This document shows positions 1,049 to 59,693 of a DNA stretch of 64,000 nucleotides, in pieces. How positions within the stretch are numbered: position 1 is the first letter of the stretch; every line of letters begins with the position of its first letter. The stretch is from the IMG/VR virus record IMGVR_UViG_3300033997_000243, positions 62,001 to 126,000 of that record; one strand, 5' to 3'. The notes under the pieces are model-generated. The model had not been told where the DNA came from and did no database searches. It worked only from the letters and a program-made list of their open reading frames with translations. The translations under genes were made by a program, and so were the position numbers.

Positions 1049-1447
1049 ATGAAAATCAAAGTATTCGTTTCGCAAAGTTCGTACTCTTTGGCCAGACTTA
1101 AAGCATCTGACTCTAAATTCAGACAGTTGGCTGACGACAGATTTACTTCGTCACAAATCAAAAAACTTATGACCAAAGGAACGAAACTTCTTATGGTTGT
1201 TACAGGTGCTTACACACGTAAGGCTGATAACAAAGTAACTCCACAACTAAACAAATATACTCTTGTCATCAAAGAAGTTGAAATAGCTGGCAACGGAAAA
1301 TTAAAAAGAGTGTTGATTGCTCCAGAAGGTAAACATTCAAAAGATGAAATTAAACCTTTATCTGCGGCTGCTTTGGCAAAACTGTTGAACGGCGAAAAGG
1401 CTACTCTTAAATCTAAGAAAGGCACCAAAAGTGCTTCTCTTAAATAA
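1049..1447 (+). CDS. Lys-rich hypothetical protein with shared N-terminal leader (putative internal head protein)
   Basis: SD AAGGA; starts MKIKVFVSQSS; highly basic. Confidence 0.75.
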   Translation: MKIKVFVSQSSYSLARLKASDSKFRQLADDRFTSSQIKKLMTKGTKLLMVVTGAYTRKADNKVTPQLNKYTLVIKEVEIAGNGKLKRVLIAPEGKHSKDEIKPLSAAALAKLLNGEKATLKSKKGTKSASLK

Positions 1448-1465
1448 ATTCAATAGGAAAATCTT

Positions 1466-2293
1466 ATGAAAATTCAAGTTATGTTGTCTGAGAGCGCAGA
1501 TTTAACTGCTGCCCAAGAAAAGAAAATTGTTGTTGGCGGTACTTTTACTTTATATACAATAGTATCAACTAAAAAGACTCCACCAAGACCGAGCATTGGC
1601 TTTATTCCGAAAGAAACTATAGAGCGCTACAAAAAGATGCCTCCTGTTATAACAAAGGCGGCCACTAACTATCGTATAACCGAAGTGAATAGCACTAAAT
1701 CTGGATCAGTTAAATCCATAGTTGCTGTTGCAGAGCGTGACAATTCTCTTACACGTAAGCATCCCGGCAATTTATCAACTTTAACATTAACTAAAGCTAA
1801 ACTTTTGAGTTTAATCGGAAACAAAATAACAAAAGAAGATGTTGGAAGTCAGAGTATAACACTTACTACAAATTCTAAAGATACAACAGCATTCTTTAAC
1901 AAAACTGAGGCAAAAGACAAACAACGCATAAAAGCCTTAGATGAACAAATAGCTAAACTTCAAAAACAACGTGAAGAATTAGCTGGAGTTCAGAAAAAGC
2001 GTAACGATGCTATACACGATGCGGAATCCGCTAAGAAACGTGCTGAACTTAAAGCACAAGGCTATAGTTATTTAGTTGTTATTGAAGGTAAAGAAACAAA
2101 GAAAAAAACTTTAAGTGAAGCCCGTTCAGTCAGACCAAAGATCGGTGAAACCGCTTCGATTTTTGCTGTATTAGCAGGTAAACGCTCAAAGATTCTTACG
2201 TGGTCAGCTAAAGATCCTGTAACCAAAAGAGTCCTTAAAGGATATAATTGGTTCTTTACTTCAGCTGCTGCACAGAAAAAGTTTGATGTATGA
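1466..2293 (+). CDS. Lys-rich hypothetical protein with shared leader; central coiled coil
   Basis: SD AGGA; starts MKIQVMLSESA. Confidence 0.75.
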   Translation: MKIQVMLSESADLTAAQEKKIVVGGTFTLYTIVSTKKTPPRPSIGFIPKETIERYKKMPPVITKAATNYRITEVNSTKSGSVKSIVAVAERDNSLTRKHPGNLSTLTLTKAKLLSLIGNKITKEDVGSQSITLTTNSKDTTAFFNKTEAKDKQRIKALDEQIAKLQKQREELAGVQKKRNDAIHDAESAKKRAELKAQGYSYLVVIEGKETKKKTLSEARSVRPKIGETASIFAVLAGKRSKILTWSAKDPVTKRVLKGYNWFFTSAAAQKKFDV

Positions 2294-2330
2294 ACTTAAT
2301 GCGTTCGATTCCTACTATTAAGGCGGCCCT

Positions 2331-2933
2331 ATGAAAATCAAAGTATTTATTAGCTCTTCAAATAACAAACCTAAAAAAATTGGAGGCTCCAATTGGTTTG
2401 ATGAACTTTCAGACGAAGCTAAAAAAGAATATATTGAAGAACATCCAAATAGTCAGTACGCTAAACATCATATGCGTATGGCAAAACATAAGGAACGTAA
2501 ATCAAGGACTGGCCAATTCGCATCCGGCTTAGATCCTAGATTTGCAGAAGCATCTAAAGGTTTAGATCCTAATCTATTAAAAGAAGTATCTAAACTGGAT
2601 GACGATTTGCAGCAAAGTTTCGCCAAAAGATTTTCTGGCGCTATGGAAGAGTTTGGTTTGGATGCTGATAGTGAAGAAACAACTGCTTCACTGGAAAGTC
2701 ACAAAAATAGAGCGTTGAAAGCAAAGAAAGATGCAGAAAACGCAACTAATCCTATCGCCAAAAAGAAAGCTTTAGCTACTTTTGAGCGTGAACGAGATAA
2801 CTACAAAGAGTTAAAGCTTGCTCACCAGAAAGCTTTGGATGTTTTAAAGACTCCTGGTAAGTTGGATAAATTTAAGAATCAGCTTGGTAGACAGCTTTTA
2901 AGTAAGCTAAGTAAAGTTCAAGCGGAAGAGTAA
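2331..2933 (+). CDS. Basic hypothetical protein with shared leader
   Basis: Starts MKIKVFISSSN; WFDELSDEAKKEYIEEHPNSQYAK resembles a motif recalled from jumbo-phage virion proteins. Confidence 0.75.
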   Translation: MKIKVFISSSNNKPKKIGGSNWFDELSDEAKKEYIEEHPNSQYAKHHMRMAKHKERKSRTGQFASGLDPRFAEASKGLDPNLLKEVSKLDDDLQQSFAKRFSGAMEEFGLDADSEETTASLESHKNRALKAKKDAENATNPIAKKKALATFERERDNYKELKLAHQKALDVLKTPGKLDKFKNQLGRQLLSKLSKVQAEE

Positions 2934-2935
2934 GA

Positions 2936-3094
2936 ATGAAAAAACTCATGGTGGCTAATCTTGCTAAGAAAATTCCTGAAGATCAGCGCAATAAACGTCA
3001 ACAAAAATTAGTTGATGAAATTCCTGAGATTCATGCACGCCTTAAACAAAAAACTGGCCCCTTTGCCTTTATGCGTAAATCGAAGTTTAATTAA
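2936..3094 (+). CDS. Small basic ORF, 52 aa (MKKLMVANLAKK...RKSKFN), absent from the ORF track
   Basis: Translated by hand; fills the gap between 2933 and the terminator at about 3093. Confidence 0.6.
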   Translation: MKKLMVANLAKKIPEDQRNKRQQKLVDEIPEIHARLKQKTGPFAFMRKSKFN

Positions 3095-3113
3095 GGGCTT
3101 CGGCCCTTTTCTT
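3093..3113 (+). terminator. Intrinsic terminator with C(UUCG)G tetraloop
   Basis: AAGGGC-TTCG-GCCCTT followed by TTCTTT. Confidence 0.8.
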
Positions 3114-3124
3114 TAGGTGAGCTT

Positions 3125-3457
3125 ATGAAAATTCTTGTGAGTCTTTGTACAAGTGTAGACAGTATTCAAAAAGAAAATGGTAAACTTGTATACAAGGGAA
3201 TGACTTTCATTGATTTTGATAAACCCATTGAAATAAAGGATAAGCGCTACAAACGTGCGGTATTAGCACGTAAAGGAAATAATTTTAAACTAATAAAGTA
3301 TGGCCATGTTGACTATGAAGATTTCACTACTCACAAAGATCCTGAACGTAGAGAAAATTTTCGCAAAAGATTTCGTGGCATCTTAAAGTCTAATGGTAAG
3401 CCAGCTTATAAAGATAAATGGCAAGCTGCGTATTGGGCATACAACGATCTTTGGTAG
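3125..3457 (+). CDS. Basic protein with leader; DUF5754-like family (recalled from large DNA viruses)
   Basis: MKILVSLCTS leader; YGHVDYEDFTTHKDPERRENFRKRF...AAYWAYNDLW. Confidence 0.65.
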   Translation: MKILVSLCTSVDSIQKENGKLVYKGMTFIDFDKPIEIKDKRYKRAVLARKGNNFKLIKYGHVDYEDFTTHKDPERRENFRKRFRGILKSNGKPAYKDKWQAAYWAYNDLW

Positions 3458-3465
3458 GGAATTCT

Positions 3466-4143
3466 ATGAAGGTTAATATATTAATTTCTGAATCTGCTTC
3501 GACAACTCGTGCATTTAAAGCAAAACTTGCTGAATTAGGTTCCTTATTGTTTGAGTCAGATAATAAATTGATCAGGGAACTAAAGGTAACTAAACCTTTT
3601 GTTAAGACCATTGATGGATTAGCTTATGCTATCCGACTTGCACGTAAATCACACGTTGCTCAAAATAAAGTTGAAGAGTTAGCTACTTTGCTCGGAGTCA
3701 ATCCAGCACATATAACTTCTGCTGTGGATAAAACTGGCTATTGTCTCCACTTTAGCTCTGGTGCTGCTACCAAAGCAATTGCTACATTAAAAAGAATGGC
3801 TAAAGCCAAATCAGTTGGAGCACCTGCTAAAAAATCTAAGACCGCAGACTTCGGTTGGAATGTAGCAATCCAACAAATGACTCGTCAGAAAGAGAATATT
3901 GTTCAAGATAAAGGTCTTGAAGTTGCAGCTAAATGTAAACTGGCTTTTGCTGACCGCATTGATAAGCTTGTTGCTAAAAATACTAAAACACATGATGTCA
4001 GAAGTTTTAGTATGGAAGTTGTTGACTATCCACAAATGACAAGCACTGTCGGCACAGACGAAGTTTATATAACTGTCAAACTAAAGCTGGATCAAAAATC
4101 TCGACCTTCTCAGGGTCGTCCAGTGAAAAAAGAATTCAAGTAA
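3466..4143 (+). CDS. Basic hypothetical protein with shared leader
   Basis: Start moved from 3418 to ATG 3466 (SD AGGGA); begins MKVNILISESA. Confidence 0.75.
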   Translation: MKVNILISESASTTRAFKAKLAELGSLLFESDNKLIRELKVTKPFVKTIDGLAYAIRLARKSHVAQNKVEELATLLGVNPAHITSAVDKTGYCLHFSSGAATKAIATLKRMAKAKSVGAPAKKSKTADFGWNVAIQQMTRQKENIVQDKGLEVAAKCKLAFADRIDKLVAKNTKTHDVRSFSMEVVDYPQMTSTVGTDEVYITVKLKLDQKSRPSQGRPVKKEFK

Positions 4144-4173
4144 TTGGTCGCTCTAAAAAGAATTCAAGTAATT
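4127..4173 (+). repeat. 19-bp direct repeat AAAAAGAATTCAAGTAATT x2
   Basis: Copies at 4127-4145 and 4155-4173; the first spans the stop codon of the upstream gene. Confidence 0.85.
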
Positions 4174-4200
4174 AAATATTTTAGTTAAAGGAAATCAAAA

Positions 4201-5421
4201 ATGAAAATTCGTGTATTCACATCAACCTCAGCGCGTAAGCGTGATATTGTAGTAAATCAAGTTGGCACCAGTTTTGAAGTGTCTGTTGACGATAAAGTTC
4301 TGGTTAAGTTTACTGGCAAAGCAACACCTGATACTATTACAGAAAAATTGCAAAAGAAAGAATTCAATGGCGCAGAAATCAAACGTGTGTTTGCTCAGAT
4401 TGCTAAGCTTGGTAAAGCTGATTCCCGTGAAGTTAAGGTTAAACCTTCAGCTGCTGATTCAAAAACAAAGAAACAGCTTTTCTCTGATGCAACTGTACGT
4501 TTGGTGGCAAAAGAATTTCCAGAAGCTATAGCTACTTTAGCTCAACTGAATAAAACAGATCGTGCTAAAGCCTATGCCAGATCGCATCATGGCCTTGGTA
4601 TGGGTGTTCGGAATTTTATGCGTTCTAAGACCACAGAAAAAGCAGTGAGAAATCCTGTCACTGCCGACGATATTTGGTCAGAAGTTTTAGATCGTGCAAT
4701 CGAATTGAAACTTTATAAAGATACGGATGCTGATGTTTACCAGTTAGCAAAAATAACTGGTAATGCTGTAAAAGAGTTGGATATGGTTTTGTACAAAGAC
4801 GCAGATTCAGTGAAGAAATTAGGAGCCTCTATTGCACGTAGCTTGAAAAAAGCTTTCGGTGATGGCATGACTATTAAAGCTCGTGTACGTGAGCACTTTA
4901 GTCCGTCACCTAATGTACCTGCACACAGATACAATCACTTTGCTGTTTCCTTACCTATCAATATGATTACTGTAGGCGGCAACAATAAACTAAATATTTA
5001 TGTCGGTACTGGCATTGTAATGATCGAAGAGGATGGGCCGAAATCTACTAAGGTTACTAACCATAAACTGGTGAAAGGAACTAACGCAGAAGTTTTGGAG
5101 GCTATTACCAAGAATCTTAAGATCAAAACCAATACTGTTGAAAAACCTGCGTCAACAGGAAAATTCAATGAAGCAAGTCAATATGTTGTTGATAAATTCG
5201 GCAAAGATCTTAAGGCAAAAGGTATTGACTTAATACCTACACCTGGTGGCATTAGTTTTTATCATCCACGTCGCGGAACCGTTAAAGCACGTTTCGGAAT
5301 CAAAAATGGTAAGATGATGCACATGACTAAGTATAAGGCCAGTTTTGGTGAAACTTTTGACATGAGTAAACCAATTAGTAAAGCTGTTATCAGCAAAATT
5401 GTCGCTCCCTTACTTAAATAA
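4201..5421 (+). CDS. Basic hypothetical protein with shared leader
   Basis: SD AAGGA; starts MKIRVFTSTSA. Confidence 0.8.
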   Translation: MKIRVFTSTSARKRDIVVNQVGTSFEVSVDDKVLVKFTGKATPDTITEKLQKKEFNGAEIKRVFAQIAKLGKADSREVKVKPSAADSKTKKQLFSDATVRLVAKEFPEAIATLAQLNKTDRAKAYARSHHGLGMGVRNFMRSKTTEKAVRNPVTADDIWSEVLDRAIELKLYKDTDADVYQLAKITGNAVKELDMVLYKDADSVKKLGASIARSLKKAFGDGMTIKARVREHFSPSPNVPAHRYNHFAVSLPINMITVGGNNKLNIYVGTGIVMIEEDGPKSTKVTNHKLVKGTNAEVLEAITKNLKIKTNTVEKPASTGKFNEASQYVVDKFGKDLKAKGIDLIPTPGGISFYHPRRGTVKARFGIKNGKMMHMTKYKASFGETFDMSKPISKAVISKIVAPLLK

Positions 5422-5434
5422 TTTTTCCATAGGA

Positions 5435-5603
5435 TAAGGAGGTGATCCATATCTCGTGGTAACTACACCACGTTAAAGAAGGTAGTAGAGCAACCGCTCC
5501 GCTGCATAGAGTCAGTGATTTGATCAACTTTAACTGGAGATCATTATGAAGGCACTTCTTATCTAAACTTTATTTCAAGAGCATTCTTTTGGGTGCTCTT
5601 TCT
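5435..5603 (+). ncRNA. Candidate structured small RNA or leader element (16S 3'-end complement, pseudoknot, mini-ORF, terminal hairpin)
   Basis: TAAGGAGGTGATCCA 5435-5449; stem CGTGGT/ACCACG whose loop ACTAC is complementary to GTAGT 5482-5486; hairpin AAGAGCATTC-TTTT-GGGTGCTCTT 5577-5600. Confidence 0.45.
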
Positions 5604-5629
5604 AATAAGGTTTCCACTAAGGAACAAAT

Positions 5630-6286
5630 ATGAAAATTCGTGTATTCATTTCAGAATCAAGTCAAGAAGATGAAGAGTTTCAAAGAATTTGCGCGTTGTA
5701 CCTTGAGCGTCAATCCGTAGTACGTGCTTTAGGTGAAATCGACCGTGTGGTAAACGCCACAACTCAGGACGCAAACGAAATAGAAAGTGATAAAAGCTTT
5801 AATACTCGTAAACGAAATCTTCAGGAAGAGGTTGCAAAGTTTGATCTTGAAATCTCAAATCTCAAACGCAGAATTTTATACGGTACTTCTCCGTGGAAAA
5901 GTAAAGATAGCGAGTGGGTTAAAGAATTTATAGCAAAATGTTCTACCTCACTTATTGCCAATCCTTCACTAATACAAGCGAATAATGAAACCCAGTATAT
6001 AGAAGTAGCTTCAAAACTTCGCAGAGAGTTACTTGATAGTGTTAGAATGATCGCAAACTTTAAAAGCGAAAATATAGCTAATCTGTTATACGCTTGCGCT
6101 AAGTTTTATTTGGATATGTCAAACAGCGGTCAAAGTTCTTTATCTCAAGTTACGTATTCGGCTGCTGTAACCGAATTGCATAAAGTTCTTGAGTTATATG
6201 AACCTATTCTTATTCGTATATACAAACACGGCATTCGTAAAGATTACATGAAAGTGTTTGCTCAGGTTTTCAAGAATTTTGGTTAA
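5630..6286 (+). CDS. Helical hypothetical protein with shared leader
   Basis: SD AAGGA; starts MKIRVFISESS. Confidence 0.8.
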   Translation: MKIRVFISESSQEDEEFQRICALYLERQSVVRALGEIDRVVNATTQDANEIESDKSFNTRKRNLQEEVAKFDLEISNLKRRILYGTSPWKSKDSEWVKEFIAKCSTSLIANPSLIQANNETQYIEVASKLRRELLDSVRMIANFKSENIANLLYACAKFYLDMSNSGQSSLSQVTYSAAVTELHKVLELYEPILIRIYKHGIRKDYMKVFAQVFKNFG

Positions 6287-8963: not shown

Positions 8964-10007
8964 ATGATTATCTCGTTGAGCGTTTCGGCAAAGAAGCCAG
9001 CCGTGCCGAACAGTGTTCAGTATGTTTTGGAACAAGCTAAAGGCCGTTTAGTTTTTGCGGAATCAGGACGTTATGTTTTCAAAACAAGACAAGGCGATTT
9101 TGCTTTAGCCCGTTTCAAAGACGAAACTAAATTTTCACCATCTATGAATGTGAAAATGTTTAGCAATAAAATGGTTTCTAAATCGGAAGATTTCAATGTA
9201 AGTACAGAAGCTTACTCTGAACCTGAAGATGAATTGCAAGCAGAAGCGGCAGCTAAAGCACCTGGTGCAAAAAATAATGCAGCCTCTACAAAGATGGGCG
9301 TTAAAAAACGTGCTCCTGGAATGATGGCTCCAGGTTGGTGGCTTTTCCATAAAGACGGCGGTAAGGTTACTCGTCAGTATGTTGGCCCACGTTTAAGCGG
9401 AAGAAAATTACTTTCTCTTGTTAAGTCTGAGAGCCAATCTAATAATGGTAAGCCTGATACAAAAGAAACCAAACATGATATTGGAGACAATACTCCGGTT
9501 AAAGTATCTAAAGTAAGTGAACTTTATGTTCCAACAAAAGATCCTGTTAATGACGCAATCAAAGTATGGAAAGCCTTGGACAAAAAACTTGAGTCCGAAG
9601 GTATTCCAACAAAAGAAACTTTAGCTGCTGTTGATGCTGCTATAGCTAAAATGCAAAAGATGTACGATGTTTTAACTTCACCTGAAAACAAAAGCAAACA
9701 TTTAGGTGACAGTATTGAACTTAACTACTACCTGAAAGACCTGAAATCTATAAGATCTGAAATGGCTAAAAAACCAAAATTAGATGAAGCAAATAAAAAA
9801 ACGCTTGCTTTATTTATGAAGGCTAAAGATGATGGTCACGGAAACATTCAAGTAAATTTTGGTGAAGAAGCAAAAGCAAAAGCAGCTAAAACTTTAATGT
9901 CAAGCTTAGGTATTTTAGCTTACACTACAGGAATGAATAGAAGATACGTCAATATTGGCAAACCTGGACATAAAAAGCTTAGAGCAATTATGAAGCAATT
10001 GTCTTAA
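8964..10007 (+). CDS. Basic hypothetical protein with leader; paralog of 7231
   Basis: Starts MIISLSVSA; shares PNS..Y.....K.R.VFA..GRY and APGAK..KMG..GWW.F.K..GKV blocks with 7231. Confidence 0.8.
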   Translation: MIISLSVSAKKPAVPNSVQYVLEQAKGRLVFAESGRYVFKTRQGDFALARFKDETKFSPSMNVKMFSNKMVSKSEDFNVSTEAYSEPEDELQAEAAAKAPGAKNNAASTKMGVKKRAPGMMAPGWWLFHKDGGKVTRQYVGPRLSGRKLLSLVKSESQSNNGKPDTKETKHDIGDNTPVKVSKVSELYVPTKDPVNDAIKVWKALDKKLESEGIPTKETLAAVDAAIAKMQKMYDVLTSPENKSKHLGDSIELNYYLKDLKSIRSEMAKKPKLDEANKKTLALFMKAKDDGHGNIQVNFGEEAKAKAAKTLMSSLGILAYTTGMNRRYVNIGKPGHKKLRAIMKQLS

Positions 10008-12503: not shown

Positions 12504-13205
12504 ATGCTTAACTATGCAAATACTCGTTTCTTCAAGACCGTTGACCGCGTTCTGGCCGACGGCGTTGGTATCAAAGAAGAAGGTTTCACTTTAGCTTTAG
12601 TTCAGGAAGAAGGTGAGTTACGTGCTCGTCTTTCAACTGGCGTTTCTGGTGAAATTTTTGGTGGCTTCGCTTGTTCAACAAACCTGCCAACAACTTTCTC
12701 AACTAAAGTTGTTGAAATTGCTGAACTGGATGATTTGACTGTTCAGTTAGATCGTACTCCACAATCTGCACAGATTCTGGTTAAAGTTGCTGGCGTTAAA
12801 TTAACTGTTGAAACTGGCACAGCTGCACCAACTGCTGATACTTCAGTTGTTCTGACTCCAGCCAACACTTTACTGTTCCACGGTAATGCTGCTGGCGAAT
12901 CAGTATTAATTCAGTATCATTATGAACTGTTAGCTTCTGAAGCAGTTGCTGAAACTGGCGATTACTTCGGTGGTGTAGGTAACAGTCCGGCTTCTGTTAT
13001 GGGTGTAGTTGGTGCTGTAATCGAAGGCACAATCTCTACAAACTTGTTCTTTGCTTCTGACGACTGGACTGGTGTTATCCATCCGAAGATGGGCGCTGGC
13101 GGTATGTTACGTGCTTCAGGTAATGGTACAGAATTAACGAATGTTAAAGTTGTACAAGTGCCGAACGCTGGTTCACCTTTCCTGACAGTTGAAGTTGGTA
13201 ACTAA
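12504..13205 (+). CDS. Head decoration/cement-like structural protein
   Basis: Lies between scaffold and capsid gene; highly-expressed codon usage; beta-rich; SD GGAG. Confidence 0.6.
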   Translation: MLNYANTRFFKTVDRVLADGVGIKEEGFTLALVQEEGELRARLSTGVSGEIFGGFACSTNLPTTFSTKVVEIAELDDLTVQLDRTPQSAQILVKVAGVKLTVETGTAAPTADTSVVLTPANTLLFHGNAAGESVLIQYHYELLASEAVAETGDYFGGVGNSPASVMGVVGAVIEGTISTNLFFASDDWTGVIHPKMGAGGMLRASGNGTELTNVKVVQVPNAGSPFLTVEVGN

Positions 13206-13252: not shown

Positions 13253-14347
13253 ATGAAAACCAATTTACAAGTCGGCGCTTCTTATCAACTGAAGAACGGC
13301 GCACCTTTGCACGATCTTCGTTTTGCCGGACAAGGTATGGCTGCACTTTCATCTAACGGTGAAATTAACGCATCAAGCAATGCAGATCTGTTAAAACAAA
13401 TTGGCCAACTTTTACAATCAGTATCAAGCGGTACTGTTGTTCAAGCTGCAACGCCTGATTCTTTCCTGTCATTATCTGCCGAGCAGAAACGTGATATTTT
13501 AGTTGCCGCAAAAGCATGTCCTAATAAGTGGGCTGCTTTAGGTGCTCACATTGCTGCTGACGTTCGTGAACAAGCAAGTCGTCAAGGTTTTTCACGCAAT
13601 CTGTGTGTGATCAATAACCTGAAGCAAGGTGAAACTCAAAAAGTTCCAATGCCTCGCCATCAAGCTAAAGCCGTTTTAGCTACTGGCCCAACTTCAATTT
13701 CTTACCAAATGATGCGTGATAAATATTTCACGCCACCAGAGTTTGAATTGAAAGCTGCTGTTCGCGTGAACAAACTGGATTTGGGTCAAGCGACTCACGA
13801 TCTGTTAGACCACGCTTACAACGATGCTGTTGAAGGTATGATCACTGCTGCTGACCGCGTGTGGAAACGTGCTGCTGATGCAACTGTAGGTAAAGCAAAT
13901 ACTTTAGCTGCTTTCGCTGGTGCATTTACTCCTGCCGTTATCGCTCGTGCTTCAACACAAATTCGTGATTGGAACTTACCAGTAAGTCGCGCTGTTATCG
14001 CAAACAGTTTTTGGGAAGATATTCAATCTGAAGGTGCCTGGGCCAATACACTGACTCCAGTATCTCAGTACGAATTAGTTATGACTGGCCGTGTTGCAAC
14101 TATCTTCGGTCTGGAATTAACTACTGACGGTTTCCGTCCTGAAAACCAACGTGTTCTGTCTCGCGGTGAAGCGTACATTGTTGCTGATAATGAATATCAC
14201 GCAACTTTAGGTTCTCGCGGTGGCATTGAATCTACTCCGACCGATGGTGCAAACCAAGGCGATACAACTAAGGGCTGGTTACTGTCAGAGGTTATGTCTC
14301 TGATAATTCCAAATACTCGCTCTGTAGTTAAAATGCAAAAGCTGTAA
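13253..14347 (+). CDS. Major capsid protein (HK97 fold)
   Basis: Start moved to ATG 13253 (SD GGAG); SRQGFSRNL..L.QG...P, ATGPT...FTPPEF, AADRVWK and TG.V.TIFG.EL.TDGFR motifs recalled from PaBG/Y3-type jumbo MCPs; position. Confidence 0.85.
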   Translation: MKTNLQVGASYQLKNGAPLHDLRFAGQGMAALSSNGEINASSNADLLKQIGQLLQSVSSGTVVQAATPDSFLSLSAEQKRDILVAAKACPNKWAALGAHIAADVREQASRQGFSRNLCVINNLKQGETQKVPMPRHQAKAVLATGPTSISYQMMRDKYFTPPEFELKAAVRVNKLDLGQATHDLLDHAYNDAVEGMITAADRVWKRAADATVGKANTLAAFAGAFTPAVIARASTQIRDWNLPVSRAVIANSFWEDIQSEGAWANTLTPVSQYELVMTGRVATIFGLELTTDGFRPENQRVLSRGEAYIVADNEYHATLGSRGGIESTPTDGANQGDTTKGWLLSEVMSLIIPNTRSVVKMQKL

Positions 14348-17946: not shown

Positions 17947-18276
17947 ATGAAAATTTTAGTGAGTTTGTCTGTTGGTTATGAGGACATAGGAAGCACGAAA
18001 CCTGTCTTAAGACTTCACCGTCCTAAAAGACGCTTTGGGCCTCGTAGAAAACTTCCGAAACCTTTTAAACGCTTGGACATTCTAAAACGCAAGTTAAGTA
18101 ACATCAGAGCGCAAATAAAACAACGCTTGAATGCAACAACTTTCCGCTTAGGTGATCCTAAAAAACTATCTAAAAAGAAATCTGAAACAATTTCGCTTTA
18201 TCTACAGTACAAAAGATTGAAGCAACAGATTGAGAAGATGGAACAGATTCAAAAAACAAAGCCTCGGCTTATGTGA
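17947..18276 (+). CDS. Very basic (R/K-rich) small protein with shared leader
   Basis: Start moved from 17821 to ATG 17947; begins MKILVSLSVG. Confidence 0.7.
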   Translation: MKILVSLSVGYEDIGSTKPVLRLHRPKRRFGPRRKLPKPFKRLDILKRKLSNIRAQIKQRLNATTFRLGDPKKLSKKKSETISLYLQYKRLKQQIEKMEQIQKTKPRLM

Positions 18277-33407: not shown

Positions 33408-33790
33408 ATCTTGACGCTAATAAGTTTCTATCCGATTGGACAAGAAACAAAACAAATTTAAGTATTATTGCTGTGAAATTTCTTGACGAAGTTAAACCCA
33501 ATTCTGTTCTCAAAGGTTTAAAATCTAAAGCACTGAGATTTGTGCCTGTTCTTCCAAATAAAAATGCACAAATAGAAAAACTTGTCAAGAAGTCAGCTAC
33601 AGTTTTTGCTACACAAGGTAAGCCAAAACCTTTAGGTGAGATATTTAATACGCTCGATGCTGTTTCAGAAAAATTTCCAAAAGAGAGCGTATTTGAGGTA
33701 ATGGTTTTTATTCAAGGCTTCGACGATTCCACGGATGCCGAAACTTACGAGTACGTGTTTACTCTAATGATTAAAAAGGTTGAGAAATGA
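33398..33790 (+). CDS. Hypothetical protein
   Basis: Coupled ORF, 130 aa. Confidence 0.6.
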   Translation: MRIDLDANKFLSDWTRNKTNLSIIAVKFLDEVKPNSVLKGLKSKALRFVPVLPNKNAQIEKLVKKSATVFATQGKPKPLGEIFNTLDAVSEKFPKESVFEVMVFIQGFDDSTDAETYEYVFTLMIKKVEK

Positions 33791-34335
33791 GAATATTAAT
33801 TAGTCTATCCAGTAAGGCTATTCGTATTGAGCAGTCGTTCGGGCCTCTGCATCTTAAAGTACAACGTGCTGACAGAAATATGTATGCAGTAAGTTGGACA
33901 AATAAAATGAAAAATGCTACTGCAAACTTTGCTAAGATGGGACAAAAGAATTATCTTGTGAGTTCAGCTGGCCCTAATCTTCCAGAAACTCAATTAGATA
34001 CGAAAGATTTAAAGCAAGGTCTGCTAATGTTCTTTGGCAATTGCAGTATTTTAAAAGTTGCTGATGAACAAGTATTGGCCGCACGTAAATGGATAGGTGA
34101 AATCATTAAAGATTACGAAGGCGTACATTCTTTGAATATTCGTATTGCTGTTCGTGGTCGTGAGCAAGATAACTTGCACCTACCTGTTACATACGGGCCA
34201 GCTGGTCAAAAGAAGAAGGGTATTTTGCTTTATATTCTGCCGCTCAGCGAGAAATGTCGAGTCATGGTATTGAACGAAGATGGTTCCAAAGGAAATGTCT
34301 TAGAAATGCCTAAAGATCAAATTTGGATAGATTAA
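33787..34335 (+). CDS. Hypothetical protein with shared leader
   Basis: Starts MRILISLSS. Confidence 0.75.
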   Translation: MRILISLSSKAIRIEQSFGPLHLKVQRADRNMYAVSWTNKMKNATANFAKMGQKNYLVSSAGPNLPETQLDTKDLKQGLLMFFGNCSILKVADEQVLAARKWIGEIIKDYEGVHSLNIRIAVRGREQDNLHLPVTYGPAGQKKKGILLYILPLSEKCRVMVLNEDGSKGNVLEMPKDQIWID

Positions 34336-34344
34336 GGGATAGCC

Positions 34345-37140
34345 ATGTTTCCACACATTCAAAAGAAAATAGATCGTTTGCAGTCTTTAGGTATGGTAGC
34401 CACTTGTTCAGTTGGTTGCGGTTCTACAAATGCACTGGTTGGCGGATCTACCTGCAAAATAGAGGGTATTCCAAAACTACATCACAGAGACAATTATATG
34501 TACTGTGAAGAAACTGGTGTTTACTACACTATTGATCGCAATTACATTGGAACCAAACCTGTGATTGCCGCATTACAATTGCTGGATGTTATTGAACCTG
34601 AATTGGCCTGTGCCGAAGATGTAGTCTGCTCTGTGGGTTATTCTCGCTTTTTAGAATCTTGGGTTCAATGGTCTATGCACGGACTTTCAATTCACAGATG
34701 CCGTGAAGATGCTGCCGAATTTAGTAAAATGATTGGCGATTTCAACATTAGTATCGAATCTGAGTTTAATGTTGACAAGTTATTTGCTCAGCGGTTTTTA
34801 ACCAGCCCAAGTATGACTCGTATTCTTGAAACCGTTGCCACTCGCTTGCAGAATCCAATAGCAACAGAAAAACATACTGTTGATCCTGAGCTAAAAGAAA
34901 TTTGCGATCAAGAAGAATCTACTCCAATGGAATTAAAACTTCAGGCGTTACGTGAACGTCGCGGTGAAACTCCTGAAGAATTTGAAAACCTTATTCGTGA
35001 TAACCTGCCAACTCCTGAGCAAAATGAAGTGTTTAAGGAAATGTTTGGCGATTTAGTTTCTTTGTTTGAACAAAAATCTGCACCACAACCTGTTCAAGTT
35101 CGTACTGTTGGTGGCCCATACCATTCTGACCACGGAAAGATAAGTGGCGAACACAAACAGCATAACGTAGATTCAAACAAAAGTGTGTTCAACAATCGTC
35201 GTCAAAGCGGTGATCATATACAGCATGGTGTACCGACTGACGCAAAACCAACTATTCCAACGAAGCCTCAAATGAATCGTTCAAAAATTAGTGGTGAGCA
35301 TATTCAACAAGGCCACCCAAATCCACCTACTCTTTATGTGACAAGTAGCGATTTGCGTTCACAAAGTTCTGACACTGTTCACGATTATACTTGGATGCGT
35401 TACAGTCCACCGAATGGGCGAAGCCGTCACTTCAATAATCACCATCGTCAGCACGAAATGTCTTTGGACATGAATGAAGTGTTTGGTTATCGTGCGATTC
35501 GTGGTGGTGAATTTTATGTTGTGTTTGAAGATAATCGCAACATAAAATTCAAATTAAGTGCGAAAGAAATGGAATCGGTTTTAAAAGTTTGTAAACCATT
35601 CCGTGGTAAAGTTGAAGGTCAGGTTATTCAACGTAAAGAAGTACCAATTCCAAAACTTTCTACTGATCGTCCATTGACACCAAAAGAAAAACAGAAACTT
35701 GCTGAGTTAGAAGCCGCTAAGAAAAAAGTGGAACCTAAGTTAAAGAATTCTGTTATCACTGGTGAGGGCAAAATTGATTTAAGTCGTGTATCTCAAGAAG
35801 AAGCTTTGAGCCGTGATACAACTTATGTTGGTTTCTTTCAATCTTCTGCATTTGCTGATGACTTTGATGTGTTCATGGATGATGATAAAGAAGATTTAGA
35901 AGATGAACTGCTTGACGCAATGCGCCGTACTAAAAATGGTATTCCAGTTTCTTATGTAATGAAGGTTAAAACAAGTTTACCTTGGGTACGCTCATTATTA
36001 GGTACTTCTGGAAAAATGCGTTTACATACTCAAGTTGCACAAAGAATTCTTGCTACACAAAAGCATGAAAAATTAGAAGCTGGAATAAACATAGAGCATT
36101 TTAAAGAACGTCCAGAGCAACCAAATTCAGGAAAGTTCAAACGCAAAGAACCTTTGTATTACGGCAACAGTTTTGCCGTGCTTTCTGAAGTTAAGCAAGC
36201 TATTCTGGCCGGACACTTTACTAAAGCTTTCCGAATCACGCAGATAACAGGTAAGTCGTCGATTAATATTGACAACAAGTTAGCTGCACAAGATCCTAGC
36301 TTTGGTATTGTATCTAATGATCCATCAAACGATGATTTCATGCTGGTACTTGCTGCTCAGAATGACAACCCGCTTTATCAACACGAAGCTGAAGAGATAC
36401 AAGGTCGGTTAGCCAGAGTTTATGGGCCAGCACTTAAATCTATTGTGAAGCATACTAAAACTTCACAAAATGGATCTGGTGTGTTGTTTGTTGTTATTAA
36501 ACTGAATCTTGCTCGTCGTCCTGATGTTGATATTGCGCGTAGCCGTAAGCTTCATAAACTTGTACAAAACATTCTTGAAAATAAACAAGGTGTTGCCAAG
36601 AAAAGTCTGGCTGAATCTGAGTTGTTAAAACTCAGTGAGCAAATGAGTGCCTTACGTAAGAATGCGGCTGCTGATGCAAGTATCTTAAAGGATAAGTTTG
36701 AAACACAACGCACTACCTTAAAGAACAGTATCATCCGTGCTAAAACTATTGCAAACCAACGTACAGTAAATCCAGCAGGTTCTGCTCGTGCTGCAAAAGA
36801 TTTAGTGCGTCATCAAACAGCTTTACAAAGTTTAGATCAGGAATATGAATTTGAACTGACTAATCTTGAGCGCAAAACAGAAGAAGCTGTTGCTAAAATT
36901 CAAAACAAAATCGATGCCATGACATCTGCTAAAGATTTCCGTTATAGCAGCGAATTAGTTTTGAATGTTCCTATCTATGCGATTAAAACAGGAACCGGCA
37001 CTTTTGTTTCGGTTGAAGCTGTTGACTATAGCATTCCAGATGGAACGATTGGTGTGCGTACTGTTCGTGGTAAAGATCGTACTATTACTCAAGTAAAAGA
37101 ACTTTACACATTTAACGGCCATTCTAAGGTTTTCCCTTAG
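34345..37140 (+). CDS. Large multidomain hypothetical (probable virion) protein, 931 aa
   Basis: His-rich repeats; domain shared with 18283 directly after RSQSS; C-terminal coiled coil. Confidence 0.8.
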   Translation: MFPHIQKKIDRLQSLGMVATCSVGCGSTNALVGGSTCKIEGIPKLHHRDNYMYCEETGVYYTIDRNYIGTKPVIAALQLLDVIEPELACAEDVVCSVGYSRFLESWVQWSMHGLSIHRCREDAAEFSKMIGDFNISIESEFNVDKLFAQRFLTSPSMTRILETVATRLQNPIATEKHTVDPELKEICDQEESTPMELKLQALRERRGETPEEFENLIRDNLPTPEQNEVFKEMFGDLVSLFEQKSAPQPVQVRTVGGPYHSDHGKISGEHKQHNVDSNKSVFNNRRQSGDHIQHGVPTDAKPTIPTKPQMNRSKISGEHIQQGHPNPPTLYVTSSDLRSQSSDTVHDYTWMRYSPPNGRSRHFNNHHRQHEMSLDMNEVFGYRAIRGGEFYVVFEDNRNIKFKLSAKEMESVLKVCKPFRGKVEGQVIQRKEVPIPKLSTDRPLTPKEKQKLAELEAAKKKVEPKLKNSVITGEGKIDLSRVSQEEALSRDTTYVGFFQSSAFADDFDVFMDDDKEDLEDELLDAMRRTKNGIPVSYVMKVKTSLPWVRSLLGTSGKMRLHTQVAQRILATQKHEKLEAGINIEHFKERPEQPNSGKFKRKEPLYYGNSFAVLSEVKQAILAGHFTKAFRITQITGKSSINIDNKLAAQDPSFGIVSNDPSNDDFMLVLAAQNDNPLYQHEAEEIQGRLARVYGPALKSIVKHTKTSQNGSGVLFVVIKLNLARRPDVDIARSRKLHKLVQNILENKQGVAKKSLAESELLKLSEQMSALRKNAAADASILKDKFETQRTTLKNSIIRAKTIANQRTVNPAGSARAAKDLVRHQTALQSLDQEYEFELTNLERKTEEAVAKIQNKIDAMTSAKDFRYSSELVLNVPIYAIKTGTGTFVSVEAVDYSIPDGTIGVRTVRGKDRTITQVKELYTFNGHSKVFP

Positions 37141-37974: not shown

Positions 37975-39642
37975 ATGATTATTTCAATTTCTGCTGTGAG
38001 TAAAAACTCTACAGAATCATTCATCAAACTTGTAGCCAGTTCAATAATGGTGTGTTTGATTGAAGAACCTTTGGGCGCTAAAGTTAAATCTAAGATCCGT
38101 AAGTGGAATTCAGACGCCGAAGAATTTTTGAAAAGATTTCGTATTCCAAGATCAACTTTCAATCCTATAGTAAATGGCTGCTTAAACGACAATGCCGATA
38201 TGGATTGGGATCTTGATGCTTTAATTCGTGTTCTGAAAGAACGTGAAAAAGCTGGTATGCTTACAAAAGAGTTGGATCTTACCAAAGACCATATTGATCT
38301 TTTGAAGTATATGATGGGTATTGTACTTCGTGGGAGTGACGCAAGTTTAAAAAATCTTACTCGTCATATTAGTAAACTTGGTGATCCTGATCTAACAGCT
38401 GTTTTCCTTCACGAAGATGCTGAGCAAAGTAACCAACAAGATTTAGTTGCAGAACTTAATAAATTCTGCCGTAAAATCTTCGGTAAGCCTGAAGCCGACT
38501 TAACTGTCGAAGATAAAAATTCGTTACGTGACAAAAAACCTGAACAGTATAAAGTTTTCCTGAAATTAATGCGGGACATTAACGAAGGGACAAAGCAAGC
38601 AACATTAAGCTTTGTCCGACAAAGTGGTGAAAAGCTTGTTAAGGCTACAGAGTTAGTTCGCTATCTAAAGCAGAACAAAATTCGCAGCAAAGTGCCTGAA
38701 GGATTCAATGGTTACGTTGATGAAAACGGTGCTTATTACAACACGAACAAAGTAAAACTTGATGGTGCTATAACAGGCCGCTTAGAAGCAAATCCTAAGT
38801 ACGATCCTGAATTGGATAACACTTACGTTTTCCTTCACTATCCACTGTTTGGTACTGGGCAGCCTCAACGTATTTACACAGTTGAGTATCGCAAAGAGAA
38901 GGCGGGTAAAAAGTTTAACACTGTTGATGCACTAATAAAAGATCTTCCGGCTGCCCGTAAAAAATGGTTGCATGAATTAAAGACAGGTCATTATGAAGAT
39001 GCTGACACTGTATCTGCTTTAATTCTTGAACTTATTTACGAAACCTCTGCTCGTATTGGTACTGCTGGTCAAAGTGGTCAAGGCATTAGCACGTTGGTAT
39101 GTAAAAACTATACTTCTCGTGGAACCGGATATTTCACATTGAATTATTTGGGCAAGAGTGGCGTTAAACAAATTCATAAAATACATACTAATAAGCCTGA
39201 AGGCAAAATGATGAAGGGGTTATTAGATAGTTTGGTTGAAGGTAAAAAGCCAAATGATTTAATAATGACTGCTCAATTCGGTCGTGCTGTTAAGCATGTG
39301 AATGGTACTTACGTAAATAAATATTTGCGTTCGTTAGGTGTAGATCAAAGCATTACACTTCACAAATTCCGACATGCCCGTGGAACCATTGTTGCAGGTG
39401 CTGTTCTTGATAAAGCTCCGGCTTTCCGTGGTAAATCTGAAGCCGAAATAAATAAATGGTTTATTGAGGCCATGAAAAAAGTTGGTGAAGAATTAGGTCA
39501 TGTTAACGGTGAAAAAGTAACTGCTACTACTGCAATTCAAAACTATATTGATCCAAACTTAATTAAAGAATGGTTCGAGAAAGTTGGTGCTCGTCCGAAC
39601 AGCACTATTCAAAAAGCAATCAACAAAGTAGCTAAGGATTAA
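37975..39642 (+). CDS. DNA topoisomerase IB-like tyrosine transesterase with N-terminal extension and leader
   Basis: ETSARIG (R), G.STL, YLGKSG (K), HKFRH (R), LGH (H), NYIDP (Tyr); starts MIISISAVS. Confidence 0.8.
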   Translation: MIISISAVSKNSTESFIKLVASSIMVCLIEEPLGAKVKSKIRKWNSDAEEFLKRFRIPRSTFNPIVNGCLNDNADMDWDLDALIRVLKEREKAGMLTKELDLTKDHIDLLKYMMGIVLRGSDASLKNLTRHISKLGDPDLTAVFLHEDAEQSNQQDLVAELNKFCRKIFGKPEADLTVEDKNSLRDKKPEQYKVFLKLMRDINEGTKQATLSFVRQSGEKLVKATELVRYLKQNKIRSKVPEGFNGYVDENGAYYNTNKVKLDGAITGRLEANPKYDPELDNTYVFLHYPLFGTGQPQRIYTVEYRKEKAGKKFNTVDALIKDLPAARKKWLHELKTGHYEDADTVSALILELIYETSARIGTAGQSGQGISTLVCKNYTSRGTGYFTLNYLGKSGVKQIHKIHTNKPEGKMMKGLLDSLVEGKKPNDLIMTAQFGRAVKHVNGTYVNKYLRSLGVDQSITLHKFRHARGTIVAGAVLDKAPAFRGKSEAEINKWFIEAMKKVGEELGHVNGEKVTATTAIQNYIDPNLIKEWFEKVGARPNSTIQKAINKVAKD

Positions 39643-40846: not shown

Positions 40847-41341
40847 ATGAAAATTTTAATCAGTTTGTCTGGCGAGAAATTTTATCGTGGAATAAATGGT
40901 AAATTTTCTACTGACTACCAAAACAAAAGCCATATAATTTGGGTCACATTAAATGCCAAATATGCTTTGCAGTATGGCGATCATTTAATGGAATATGACA
41001 TAAACTTAGGCCAAGGATTTAATTTTGGCTTTCGTACACTTGATGCTCAAGTGACCTTTAGTGAAATCATTTCCAGAATAAAGCAAGGTATCCTAGATTC
41101 CTATAAAAAATTTAACCTTGTATCAAAAGATAAAGCGCTGACACTGTACAATGAGTTAAATTCATTAAATCATGGTGGCCATAAAAAAGTTTGGGAGTGG
41201 TATCAGACTGAGCCAAAACTTGCTGAATTGTTATTGAAGTCTGGATACACTCATATAGATGCACTTGAAGGAAAATACAACGACATAAGAACTGTTGGTA
41301 TTCTTAAAAAGAGCATTATAAAGGGAAACAAATCATTATGA
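40847..41341 (+). CDS. ADP-ribosyltransferase-fold (ART-PolyVal-like) protein with shared leader
   Basis: MKILISLSG leader; FYRG, W.T.N..YA.QYG.....Y.I, L.K.GY..I. Confidence 0.55.
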   Translation: MKILISLSGEKFYRGINGKFSTDYQNKSHIIWVTLNAKYALQYGDHLMEYDINLGQGFNFGFRTLDAQVTFSEIISRIKQGILDSYKKFNLVSKDKALTLYNELNSLNHGGHKKVWEWYQTEPKLAELLLKSGYTHIDALEGKYNDIRTVGILKKSIIKGNKSL

Positions 41342-42523: not shown

Positions 42524-42840
42524 AAATAAATTTTAAAAATGTCCCATCAGTTGCCATTGATTCTAGGTTTCAAAAAGTATTTAATGCTTATAACAAAGAA
42601 ACTCGTGAATACATGCACTATCTACATAGCGTTGCCGAGAATCCAAGTCTACAGCACGAAAGACCTGCTATAAATACCAACAGGCTTCACAGAATAAGTG
42701 AACTTATTAAGGCAGAACTTAGTAAACGTATTAACATGGATGGTCTTGATTTTTACGAAAACTACGTATGCCGTTTTGATGGAAACAAAAACGCTTTTGT
42801 TCAACCAATTTATAGAATTGTTTTTAAGGACATGAAATGA
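42520..42840 (+). CDS. Hypothetical protein
   Basis: ATGA coupling on both sides. Confidence 0.65.
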   Translation: MKINFKNVPSVAIDSRFQKVFNAYNKETREYMHYLHSVAENPSLQHERPAINTNRLHRISELIKAELSKRINMDGLDFYENYVCRFDGNKNAFVQPIYRIVFKDMK

Positions 42841-43229
42841 AAGTTAAAGTATTTGTAGCTAAGGCCACCAATCTGAGAAATAAACCGTTAAGTGAATACT
42901 CACAGCGCGAAGAGTTACGGAAATTTTGGCCGTTGCGTGATGCTATTGTTGTAGGGAACATGCAGGAAAAGCAACTGATAAATATGATTCGAGATCTTAT
43001 TGACTGGTACTACGATGCTAAAGATGAACGTGACGAAAATTTAGCATTAGCTTGTGTTGAGTTAATGCGTACTCGTGGAGTAACCAGACGCTTACCTCAA
43101 ATTGCGGCAGTAAATGCAGAATTCAACAATTCACCTACTTACAAACATTGGTCAAAGATAACACTGGCAGCCAGTATAGCCGAAAATAAAATCATTTTAG
43201 CTAATCGTAAACCAGAGGACAGATTTTAA
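42837..43229 (+). CDS. Hypothetical protein with leader variant
   Basis: Starts MKVKVFVAKAT. Confidence 0.7.
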   Translation: MKVKVFVAKATNLRNKPLSEYSQREELRKFWPLRDAIVVGNMQEKQLINMIRDLIDWYYDAKDERDENLALACVELMRTRGVTRRLPQIAAVNAEFNNSPTYKHWSKITLAASIAENKIILANRKPEDRF

Positions 43230-44240: not shown

Positions 44241-46164
<1,924 letters not shown>

Positions 46165-58817: not shown

Positions 58818-59693
58818 TTAAAAGTTTTTGATTATTACCTCTACTGTTCCATTGTCTTTTGTATCGGCTGCTCGATTCAATGAGTAGAGTTCACCCTTAC
58901 CCGTAAAAGAAGGATAAGAATAATTGTATTGTTTCATCCACTTTGCCAGTGGTTTGTTTTTATGCCCACGATGTTTTGTTACGTTACTGAGTACCCAACG
59001 TATTCCAATTTTGTTCAGGTAATCAAGTAAGTCACGCAACTTTTGATCGTCTGCTGCTGTCCATTCGCCAACATATACATTTGCACCACTGGCTAAATAC
59101 GGCGGATCAAAATAAAACACATGCGATTTATCTGCTTTAGCCAGTGCGTGTTTCACATACTGCAAGTAAGTTTTGTTGTGTAACTTAACTCGTTGCAAGC
59201 GAGTCCAAAATTGCTGAATCCAAAAATCACGACTTTTAGATTTCTGTGGACTACGAAAACCAAAAGGTAAGTTGAATTCACCTTCTTCGTTAAAACGAAT
59301 CAAACTGCTGAAACTGTGCTTGCTTAAAACCCACAAATCAAACCAATTGGGAGACTTATTAAACTTATTGCGAAAGCGATAGTAAGCGTCCTCGTATTCT
59401 CGCGTGTTACCAAGTTTGTGTTTGCGTATTGTAGCATCCAACTGCTTAACAATTTCTTGCCAAGTTGGTCTGGATTTTAAATGGCACAGTACACCATACA
59501 CATTCGGATCTAATTCGTTAATGTGTACTGTTTTAGCTATAGGCATATTCAAACCTACAGTACCACTTCCACCAAACACATCATGTAATACTTTTACCGG
59601 AGAACAATTTTGTTGTAGGGCCGCCAACAACTTGTACTTGCTTCCTTGATAACTTAATGGCGATCTTACTAATAAATGACTATCCATTATCAA
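58818..59693 (-). CDS. dam: Dam/D12-class N6-adenine DNA methyltransferase
   Basis: RSPLSYQGSK..LL, DVFGGSG.V (motif I), INELD, FNLPFG, FYFDPPY (motif IV), LSN. Confidence 0.9.
   Translation of the reverse strand: MIMDSHLLVRSPLSYQGSKYKLLAALQQNCSPVKVLHDVFGGSGTVGLNMPIAKTVHINELDPNVYGVLCHLKSRPTWQEIVKQLDATIRKHKLGNTREYEDAYYRFRNKFNKSPNWFDLWVLSKHSFSSLIRFNEEGEFNLPFGFRSPQKSKSRDFWIQQFWTRLQRVKLHNKTYLQYVKHALAKADKSHVFYFDPPYLASGANVYVGEWTAADDQKLRDLLDYLNKIGIRWVLSNVTKHRGHKNKPLAKWMKQYNYSYPSFTGKGELYSLNRAADTKDNGTVEVIIKNF

Follow-up and report, generated by a model that had tools for sequence, protein, structure and literature searches.

We analysed a 64-kb window comprising bases 62,001-126,000 of a 319,518-bp complete IMG/VR virus record (IMGVR_UViG_3300033997_000243) with direct terminal repeats. 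At window positions 40847-41341 on the + strand, it encodes a 164-amino-acid (aa) ADP-ribosyltransferase (ART) protein, hereafter P0001, which is preceded by a short N-terminal leader. Because this ten-residue tag is common to unrelated small basic proteins of the same phage, P0001 is probably loaded into the capsid and, as judged from sequence, probably belongs to a set of capsid-loaded enzymes that are delivered into the host with the DNA. On balance, we favor the explanation that P0001 is an NAD+-dependent ART that is loaded by its tag, travels with the DNA, and modifies a host macromolecule early in infection. The gene and its leader are as follows.

Window 40847..41341, + strand: stand-alone ART gene P0001, of a divergent R-type ART-PolyVal subfamily (open reading frame, AlphaFold2 model, fold matches, hhalign, and ratio of nonsynonymous to synonymous substitution rates, dN/dS).
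Window 40847..40876, + strand: leader MKILISLSGE, codons 1-10, outside the folded domain, which begins at about residue 10 (AlphaFold2 model and position-specific scoring matrix, PSSM).

The P0001 reading frame encodes 164 aa from an ATG that is the earliest possible start downstream of an in-frame stop codon. The start codon lies 2 nt downstream of the stop codon of the preceding gene, and the 3' end overlaps the next gene in an ATGA, indicating that P0001 is part of a tightly packed + strand operon. One copy was present in the whole genome. Comparison with an orthologue in a 214-kb contig, 93% identical at the nucleotide level, gave a dN/dS of 0.14; the gene is under purifying selection. The GC content was 37.6%, and the sequencing runs containing the P0001 region were subsurface and wastewater metagenomes. 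Searching a collection of 5.8 billion proteins revealed four close homologues, and an exhaustive search (E ≤ 1e-3) gave 82 cluster representatives at 50% identity, spread widely in metagenomic phages. Homologues with 32-34% identity were found in 37 cultured-phage records, all from Erwinia Y3-like or Dickeya AD1 jumbo phages and all annotated as "hypothetical protein"; the orthologues are Y3_193 in Erwinia phage vB_EamM_Y3 (Y3) and AD1_189 in Dickeya phage vB_DsoM_AD1 (AD1). No neighbor gene of the ART was found to be conserved across loci, so no immunity partner is in sight, and the Macro and ADP-ribosylglycohydrolase families had no match in the P0001 phage genome.

The fold of P0001 was predicted with AlphaFold2 (AF2) from an alignment of the stand-alone family (A1). 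The model had a predicted local distance difference test score (pLDDT) of 93.3 and a predicted template modeling score (pTM) of 0.85; pLDDT was below 50 at residues 1-6 only, and the first strand spanned residues 10-16. When the model was searched against the PDB with Foldseek, the top match was 6KYF (AcrIF11; prob 1.0, E 5e-3), followed by a cyanophage pre-ejectosome chain, RhsP2, ParT, and diphtheria-toxin homologues, and RES, MbcT, NatT, Arr, and Tpt1/KptA were also among the fold matches. BFVD returned 19 matches at E ≤ 1e-3, many called "PolyVal ADP-ribosyltransferase", which included other jumbo phages, MuF fusions, and an N4-like virion RNA polymerase. ESM Atlas neighbors bore PF18760 and PF26151. 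As modeled, P0001 has the split β-sheet core fold of the ART superfamily. An ART fold with an R-type first motif had been proposed in the original prediction, which was made from the sequence alone, and AF2, Foldseek, BFVD, and hhalign all bore it out. PDB sequence or profile matches to M11L (E 0.004), LRRC8A, and a designed protein were discarded as spurious, being chance matches on the helical insert described below.

Direct scans of P0001 with Pfam, PHROGs, NCBIfam, and PADLOC gave no match, and the family was recognized through its homologues. Those detected by phmmer (E 1e-8 to 1e-15) carried PF18760 (ART-PolyVal) above the gathering score on the region matching P0001, with 87 bits in P0053 and 55 bits in P0037, and several were domains within proteins of 0.5 to 4.9 thousand aa, alongside LPD23/LPD39 polyvalent modules. 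The profile A1 was then aligned by hhalign with a profile of Pfam-verified ART-PolyVal domains (A2), giving a probability of 100% and an E value of 5.6e-43 over 164 columns. On this profile evidence, P0001 is homologous to verified PF18760 members over the full domain, and we place it on the ART-PolyVal/AcrIF11-like (diphtheria-toxin-like) side of the ART superfamily, in the Tox-ART-HYD2 clade. PF18760 matched 6 of the 42 stand-alone subfamily members and gave no match in the phage's own genome. PF26151 (AcrIF11) matched none of the 42, and no PDB sequence match to AcrIF11 was obtained. Likewise, no Pfam match indicated homology of P0001 to Alt/VIP2 (R-S-E-2).

To describe the predicted active site, residue counts were taken from a hidden Markov model alignment of 88 homologous domains with 25-35% overall identity. 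All strings quoted in the original prediction were present in P0001, namely MKILISLSG (1-9), FYRG (12-15), WVT (32-34), YALQYG (39-44), and GY..I (133-137), and the domain motifs among them were conserved in this alignment. The invariant acidic residue had been absent from those motifs; it is E141, just after GY..I. Three elements make up the putative site.

Window 40883..40891, + strand: Y13-R14-G15, motif I on strand 1 (alignment, hhalign).
Window 40940..40948, + strand: W32-V33-T34, motif II on strand 2 (S/T position), followed by the Y39-A40..Y43 helix (alignment, AF2).
Window 41267..41269, + strand: E141, candidate catalytic glutamate at the end of strand 136-141 (x-E-G) (alignment, hhalign).

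In motif I, Y13 was found in 77 domains, R14 in 80 of 85 (H instead in 4), and G15 in 83. W32 was conserved in 83 domains, T/S34 in 85 of 86, A40 in 81, and Y43 in 85 of 86, while E141 was found in 84 of 86 domains of the broad alignment and was invariant in A1. Other conserved positions were G61 (82), R63 (80), R77 (82), W118 (79), G133 (77), I137 (63), T149 (72), and G151 (76). In the AF2 model, R14 lies on strand 10-16, W32-V-T34 forms strand 31-34, Y39 and Y43 are in the next helix, and E141 closes strand 136-141; thus modeled, R14, T34, and E141 have the canonical strand-1/strand-2/strand-5 arrangement of the three ART motifs. In the hhalign alignment, R14 was matched with the His of "Y-H-G" in canonical ART-PolyVal, and E141 with the x-E-G ("AREGG") of a Pfam-verified domain. 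The ARTs of polyvalent proteins have been described as H-Y-D, with the H on strand 1, the Y on strand 2, and the D on strand 5 (PMC5512222); in place of these residues, P0001 has R14, T34 (with W32 and Y43), and E141. Since this set differs from both H-Y-D and the AcrIF11 residues, the P0001 branch is described here as an R/(W)-S/T/Y/E variant. The [QE]-x-E motif was absent from the family, and position 139 was variable, mostly A, Q, H, or S. The core is interrupted by a helical insert of ~60 residues (71-131) with near-invariant R77 and W118, a putative substrate-recognition module by analogy with the variable helical region of AcrIF11, which has been suggested to recognize the target.

The leader is a genuine, modular, lineage-specific tag and not part of the enzyme. 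Some P0001 homologues begin at the domain itself, without it (MIVYRG, MALTLYRG, MDGVFYRG). Its consensus in the genome is MKI-L-V-S-L-S-A. A loose regular expression for the leader matched 16 of 404 N-termini and 1 of 1670 internal Met positions. Pooled N-terminal composition predicts 0.8 matches among the N-termini, and none of 500 simulations gave more than 3. With the PSSM, 21 genes scored 11.6 to 25.1 (20.6 for P0001), whereas the control maximum at 1589 internal-Met positions was 6.1. These counts upheld the shared leader that the original prediction had pointed out, and the tag marks ~5% of the genes of the phage. The leader codons vary synonymously (Ser AGT, AGC, TCT, and TCG; Leu TTA, TTG, CTT, and CTA), and the DNA upstream of leader genes is unconserved except for the Shine-Dalgarno sequence, indicating selection on the leader peptide rather than on an RNA or DNA element.

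Beyond the tag, the proteins have little in common. After removal of the first 12 residues, BLASTP similarity was found in 1 of 210 pairs of tagged proteins. They are basic, with a median isoelectric point (pI) of 9.6 versus 6.6 and with 81% versus 27% above pI 9 (Mann-Whitney p 1.6e-8); the pI of P0001 is 9.4. The internal proteins of T4, which are unrelated, basic, fast-evolving, and small, have a short N-terminal targeting peptide in common (PMC7411985, PMC3012670, PMC8442874), and the tagged set described here, small basic proteins of a single phage with almost no mutual similarity, follows this pattern. No cultured-phage homologue was found for those tagged proteins other than P0001 that were tested, which left no annotation to transfer. 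The other tagged genes are located as follows.

Window 1049..6286, + strand: seven consecutive tagged genes, starting at 1049, 1466, 2331, 3125, 3466, 4201, and 5630 (PSSM).
Window 8964..10007, + strand: tagged 347-aa protein, MIISLSVSAKK, inside the head-gene region (PSSM 14.5).
Window 17947..18276, + strand: tagged 109-aa protein, MKILVSLSVGY, directly downstream of the tail tube gene (PSSM).
Window 33787..34335, + strand: tagged 182-aa protein, MRILISLSSKA, found in contig L029 too (PSSM 19.3).
Window 42837..43229, + strand: tagged 130-aa protein, MKVKVFVAKATN (PSSM 13.5).
Genome 194555-198254, - strand: second array, seven consecutive tagged genes (PSSM).
Genome 242.2 and 318.7 kb: two more tagged genes (PSSM).

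The first array lies directly upstream of genes for a virion structural protein (12504-13205), the major head protein (13253-14347), sheath, and tube, and contains DUF5754 in the tagged gene 3125-3457. The second has thymidylate synthase, RNase H, and baseplate wedge genes as its neighbors. In both, the genes encode small, basic, mutually unrelated products starting MKI-x-V-x-x-S, and these products may be internal or ejected proteins. The 555-aa product of 37975-39642 (+), with a eukaryotic/poxvirus-type topoisomerase IB core (PF01028, E 1e-15; phrog_23460, E 8e-121), begins with a weak form of the leader (MIISISAVSKNS, PSSM 3.7) and is possibly also tagged. Directly after a tagged gene and 3.7 kb upstream of the ART, window 34345-37140 (+) encodes a 931-aa protein with a KMPT-N domain (PF20294, 30.7 bits). 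Such domains are modules of polyvalent/metallopeptidase proteins, and the 931-aa product may itself be an injected protein of the classical polyvalent type.

The same ART cargo was found behind a second, unrelated tag. The jumbo-type leader was present on 11 of the 42 stand-alone ART representatives, and at least 10 of the 42 start M-x-x-F-x-x-F-[IL]-x-E, for example MKTFKQFITE, MKSFSQFINE, and MKTFLQFLLE. The junction between tag and domain is at about the same place before Y-R-G, with the R at residue 12-15 behind the jumbo leader and at 15-22 behind the T4-type tag. The capsid-targeting sequence (CTS) of T4 is MKTYQEFIAE, which is cleaved by gp21 and is sufficient for loading foreign proteins into heads (PMC8442874, PMC10229621, PMC7411985, PMC3012670); the T4 internal proteins and Alt use a CTS of 10-20 aa (PMC7411985). 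P0044 (MKTFKQFITE...) is encoded in T4-like contigs of 91-157 kb with gp15, gp23, gp18, gp19, and a T4 portal gene. Its gene is one of seven consecutive genes with the start MK[TS]FKQFI.E, located between the sheath and tube/portal genes; another of the seven encodes a second, H-type ART-PolyVal. None of the 21 pairs in this run was similar beyond the tag. In contig L004, another ART homologue directly follows a GNAT gene bearing the same T4-type tag.

Two T4-like loci stand out. At L006:10001-15980 (JGI 3300008007), the seven T4-CTS-like genes between the sheath and tube/portal genes include two ARTs and a DUF5662 protein, so that the region looks like a large internal-protein locus of an uncultured T4-like phage; the terminase gene of this contig has a LAGLIDADG insertion. 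P0035 (L008:2779-3879), in a T4-like context with T4 RNase H, SegE, and a DenV-like gene, is a CTS-tagged fusion of a cytidylyltransferase-like (NMNAT-type) domain with an R-type ART, and NAD-making and NAD-using domains thus appear in one candidate packaged protein.

The leader is retained in relatives of the P0001 phage. The Y3 and AD1 orthologues start MQIFVSLSS and LQIFVSLSA, respectively, and Y3 has nine tagged genes, among them Y3_187, 194-196, 205, and 206. A 130-kb contig (L030, IMGVR_UViG_3300033997_000077) encodes an R-type ART that is 34% identical to P0001, and at L030:3069-12564 at least 10 consecutive genes start M[KQR]IQLSLSA-like. Three ARTs are among them, an H-type ART-PolyVal (90.8 bits), the R-type orthologue, and a weaker H-type ART-PolyVal (24.9 bits), together with a NUDIX enzyme (62 bits) and a zincin-like HExxH protein (weak PF07737 match, below the cut-off). 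None of the 45 pairs in this array was similar beyond the tag. In relatives, therefore, the tag marks whole arrays of ART, NUDIX, and zincin-like enzymes. Domains of these types were predicted to be packaged and injected as parts of polyvalent proteins by Iyer et al. (PMC5512222), whereas here they occur as separate tagged polypeptides. Enzymes of NAD and ADP-ribose (ADPr) metabolism have been proposed to be virion-borne (PMC9503650), and ART-PolyVal itself has been predicted to be packaged in virions (PMC5512222, PMC9503650).

In Y3_187, 194, and 196 and in AD1_190 and 192, a longer N-terminal pattern was seen, M-x-x-I-K-L-N-L-(5-7 aa)-S-E-S-A, which may be an extended leader with a candidate processing site. 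This pattern was not enriched in the P0001 phage genome, and the "SES" motif after the leader, considered as a cleavage signal, was dropped because it occurred 6 times there against 3.8 expected.

From these comparisons we propose a course of events in which ART activity, capsid loading, any cleavage, and the target are inferred. NAD+ would be bound by R14 on strand 1, W32-x-T34 on strand 2, and Y43, with E141 serving as catalytic acid and the helical insert (71-131, with R77 and W118) selecting the substrate. The most likely role of the leader is that it acts like the T4 CTS and loads the ART into the procapsid. The ART would then enter the host with the DNA and ADP-ribosylate a host macromolecule at the very start of infection, possibly a defense protein, the transcription or translation machinery, or nucleic acid. 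We further suggest, more tentatively and at somewhat less than an even chance, that M-K-I-L-V-S-L-S-A is an undescribed capsid-loading (ejection) tag of a clade of large/jumbo phages, in which the uncultured 320-kb P0001 phage is joined by the group of Erwinia Y3 and Dickeya AD1 and by relatives from metagenomes. As part of this suggestion, the tag system would amount to "unbundled" polyvalent injected proteins, convergent with the T4 CTS and swapped with it onto the same ART cargo.

Considering that the tag is real, that T4-like homologues carry a CTS, and that tagged genes form arrays, some beside head genes, packaging and injection are a well-supported inference. Several observations nevertheless weigh against the proposal. 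For the enzyme, PF18760 (gathering threshold 31.2 bits) did not match P0001 even at E ≤ 1, and activity is not guaranteed because the active site departs from the published H-Y-D. For packaging, no tagged gene of Y3 or AD1, the ART homologues included, has an annotation other than "hypothetical protein" (a scan of the whole of Y3 for tagged genes with "structural protein" labels likewise returned only "hypothetical"), and in both phages the ART gene lies among replication/recombination genes, not head genes. The prohead protease families S77, S78, ClpP, and S49 were not found in the genome. S77 (PF03420) had no match in the P0001 genome or in Y3/AD1, in a search without a positive control, so that its absence is not established, and a candidate scaffold/protease at 6297-7115 was matched over a short N-terminal stretch only. 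E10 was considered as a T4-like cleavage residue and rejected since it is unconserved among orthologues; hence no cleavage site can be named, and possibly the tag is never removed. The packaged and injected ART of the original prediction is thus favored in its capsid loading by the comparative data (a T4 CTS at the same junction in T4-like homologues), while no head protease was found to go with it.

The comparison with known systems refines this assignment. Like P0001, with which it shares domain-wide homology, ART-PolyVal (PF18760) is predicted to travel with the invading DNA. P0001 differs in being a stand-alone protein of 164 aa that is missed by the Pfam model and has R/W-x-T/Y/E instead of H-Y-D; delivery of P0001 would rely on a short N-terminal tag instead of fusion into a giant virion protein. 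AcrIF11 (6KYF, 8DWQ) is an anti-CRISPR mono-ADP-ribosyltransferase that modifies Csy1/Cas8f. It is ~12-14% identical to P0001, with no match at the sequence level, and its active site is H-F-H-D or H20/Y46/D146-E147, as opposed to the R...E of P0001, which places P0001 outside the AcrIF11 family. AcrIF11 lacks a leader and, as far as is known, is not packaged; nothing ties P0001 to CRISPR. The likeness to diphtheria-toxin-type ARTs (7K7B, 7RI3) is at the fold level only (10-12% identity); their first motif has H where P0001 has R, and P0001 has no translocation or receptor domains. T4 Alt and the internal proteins IPI-III share the concept, a head-borne injected ART and a short targeting peptide on unrelated basic small proteins. 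Alt is a ~76-kDa protein of the R-S-E-2/VIP2-like clade, a different ART family from P0001, and the T4 CTS MKTYQEFIAE is unrelated in sequence to MKILISLSGE, so that P0001 itself lacks a T4-type tag, although its homologues in T4-like phages do carry a T4-type CTS; nor was a gp21-type (S77) protease found in its genome. The "minimal analogue" of Alt proposed earlier accordingly holds as a functional analogy only, as P0001 is not an Alt homologue but ART-PolyVal/AcrIF11-like.

The strongest competitor, which we consider less likely although it deserves serious weight, is an active cytoplasmic ART that is made after infection, like AcrIF11 or T4 ModA/ModB, and is never packaged. The decapeptide would then serve another purpose, such as docking to the phage assembly machinery or chaperonin, controlled turnover, or co-translational sorting. 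AcrIF11, a non-packaged anti-CRISPR, is indeed the nearest match among solved structures; in Y3 and AD1 the ART gene is surrounded by genes of DNA metabolism; the second tagged array is flanked by thymidylate synthase and RNase H; no prohead protease was identified; and, for chaperonin docking, the phage encodes its own GroEL/GroES. However, T4-like phages have the same catalytic domain joined, at the same junction, to a bona fide T4 CTS; the tagged proteins resemble T4 internal proteins in their small size, basic charge, fast evolution, and lack of relationship to one another; and one tagged array adjoins head genes.

Two alternatives concern the substrate, and we regard both as unlikely to a similar degree. 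The ART fold may belong to an NAD+ glycohydrolase/phosphorylase or a small-molecule enzyme, as in RES, MbcT, and Arr, that reshapes NAD+-derived pools or signals. RES, MbcT, NatT, and Arr were among the fold matches, and P0001 has a single Glu without the [QE]-x-E motif. The NMNAT-type fusion P0035 and the NUDIX neighbor in L030 also fit such an enzyme, and they tie the ART family to NAD/ADPr metabolism. In the other alternative, the ART modifies nucleic acid in the manner of DarT and RhsP2, with host RNA/DNA or the DNA of the phage itself as the substrate. This would agree with the pI of 9.4, the extra invariant arginines R63 and R77, and the fold matches to RhsP2 and Tpt1/KptA; those matches were weaker than the ones to AcrIF11 and the diphtheria-toxin group, however, and the basic charge is common to all tagged proteins and may therefore reflect co-packaging with DNA rather than substrate choice. 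Finally, a catalytically dead ART fold serving only as a structural internal head protein, to which the departure from H-Y-D and the failure of the Pfam model might point, is very improbable given the near-invariance of R14, T/S34, Y43, and E141 over 88 domains at 25-35% identity and the dN/dS of 0.14.

Head-packaged phage ARTs are as such a published idea, known from T4 Alt and predicted for polyvalent proteins (PMC5512222, PMC9503650), but no account is known of small ARTs that stand alone and bear a recognizable delivery tag. In the literature searched, including a jumbo-phage genomics survey, we found no description of the R-type stand-alone ART branch or of the MKILVSLSA-type tag and its arrays; nor did we find one, in the literature searched, of a tag swap on one cargo between phage lineages. 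P0001 defines an R-type, Pfam-invisible branch of ART-PolyVal that is widespread in metagenomic phages. One ART cargo carries two unrelated N-terminal tags in two phage lineages, one of them the experimentally proven T4 CTS, and this swap gives a concrete, cheap hypothesis for effector loading by jumbo phages. The P0001 phage genome yields a list of ~21 candidate ejected proteins, and the cultured phages with orthologues, Y3 (Y3_193) and AD1 (AD1_189), offer test systems. The likeness to AcrIF11 makes P0001 a candidate first-minute counter-defense factor. If our interpretation of the tag is true, sequence alone could reveal which proteins uncultured phages inject, and the tag could offer a means of loading cargo into the heads of jumbo phages.

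Some minor features were also observed. At L031:10001-10519, in a 230-kb contig, the R-type ART orthologue diverges past "GREGP" and loses the last two strands, which could be due to a frameshift or an assembly error. In the window, a phage-encoded chaperonin pair, Cpn60/GroEL (PF00118, 244 bits) and Cpn10/GroES (PF00166, 79 bits), is located at 44241-46164 (-), and a D12-class N6-adenine DNA methyltransferase (PF02086, 101 bits) at 58818-59687 (-).

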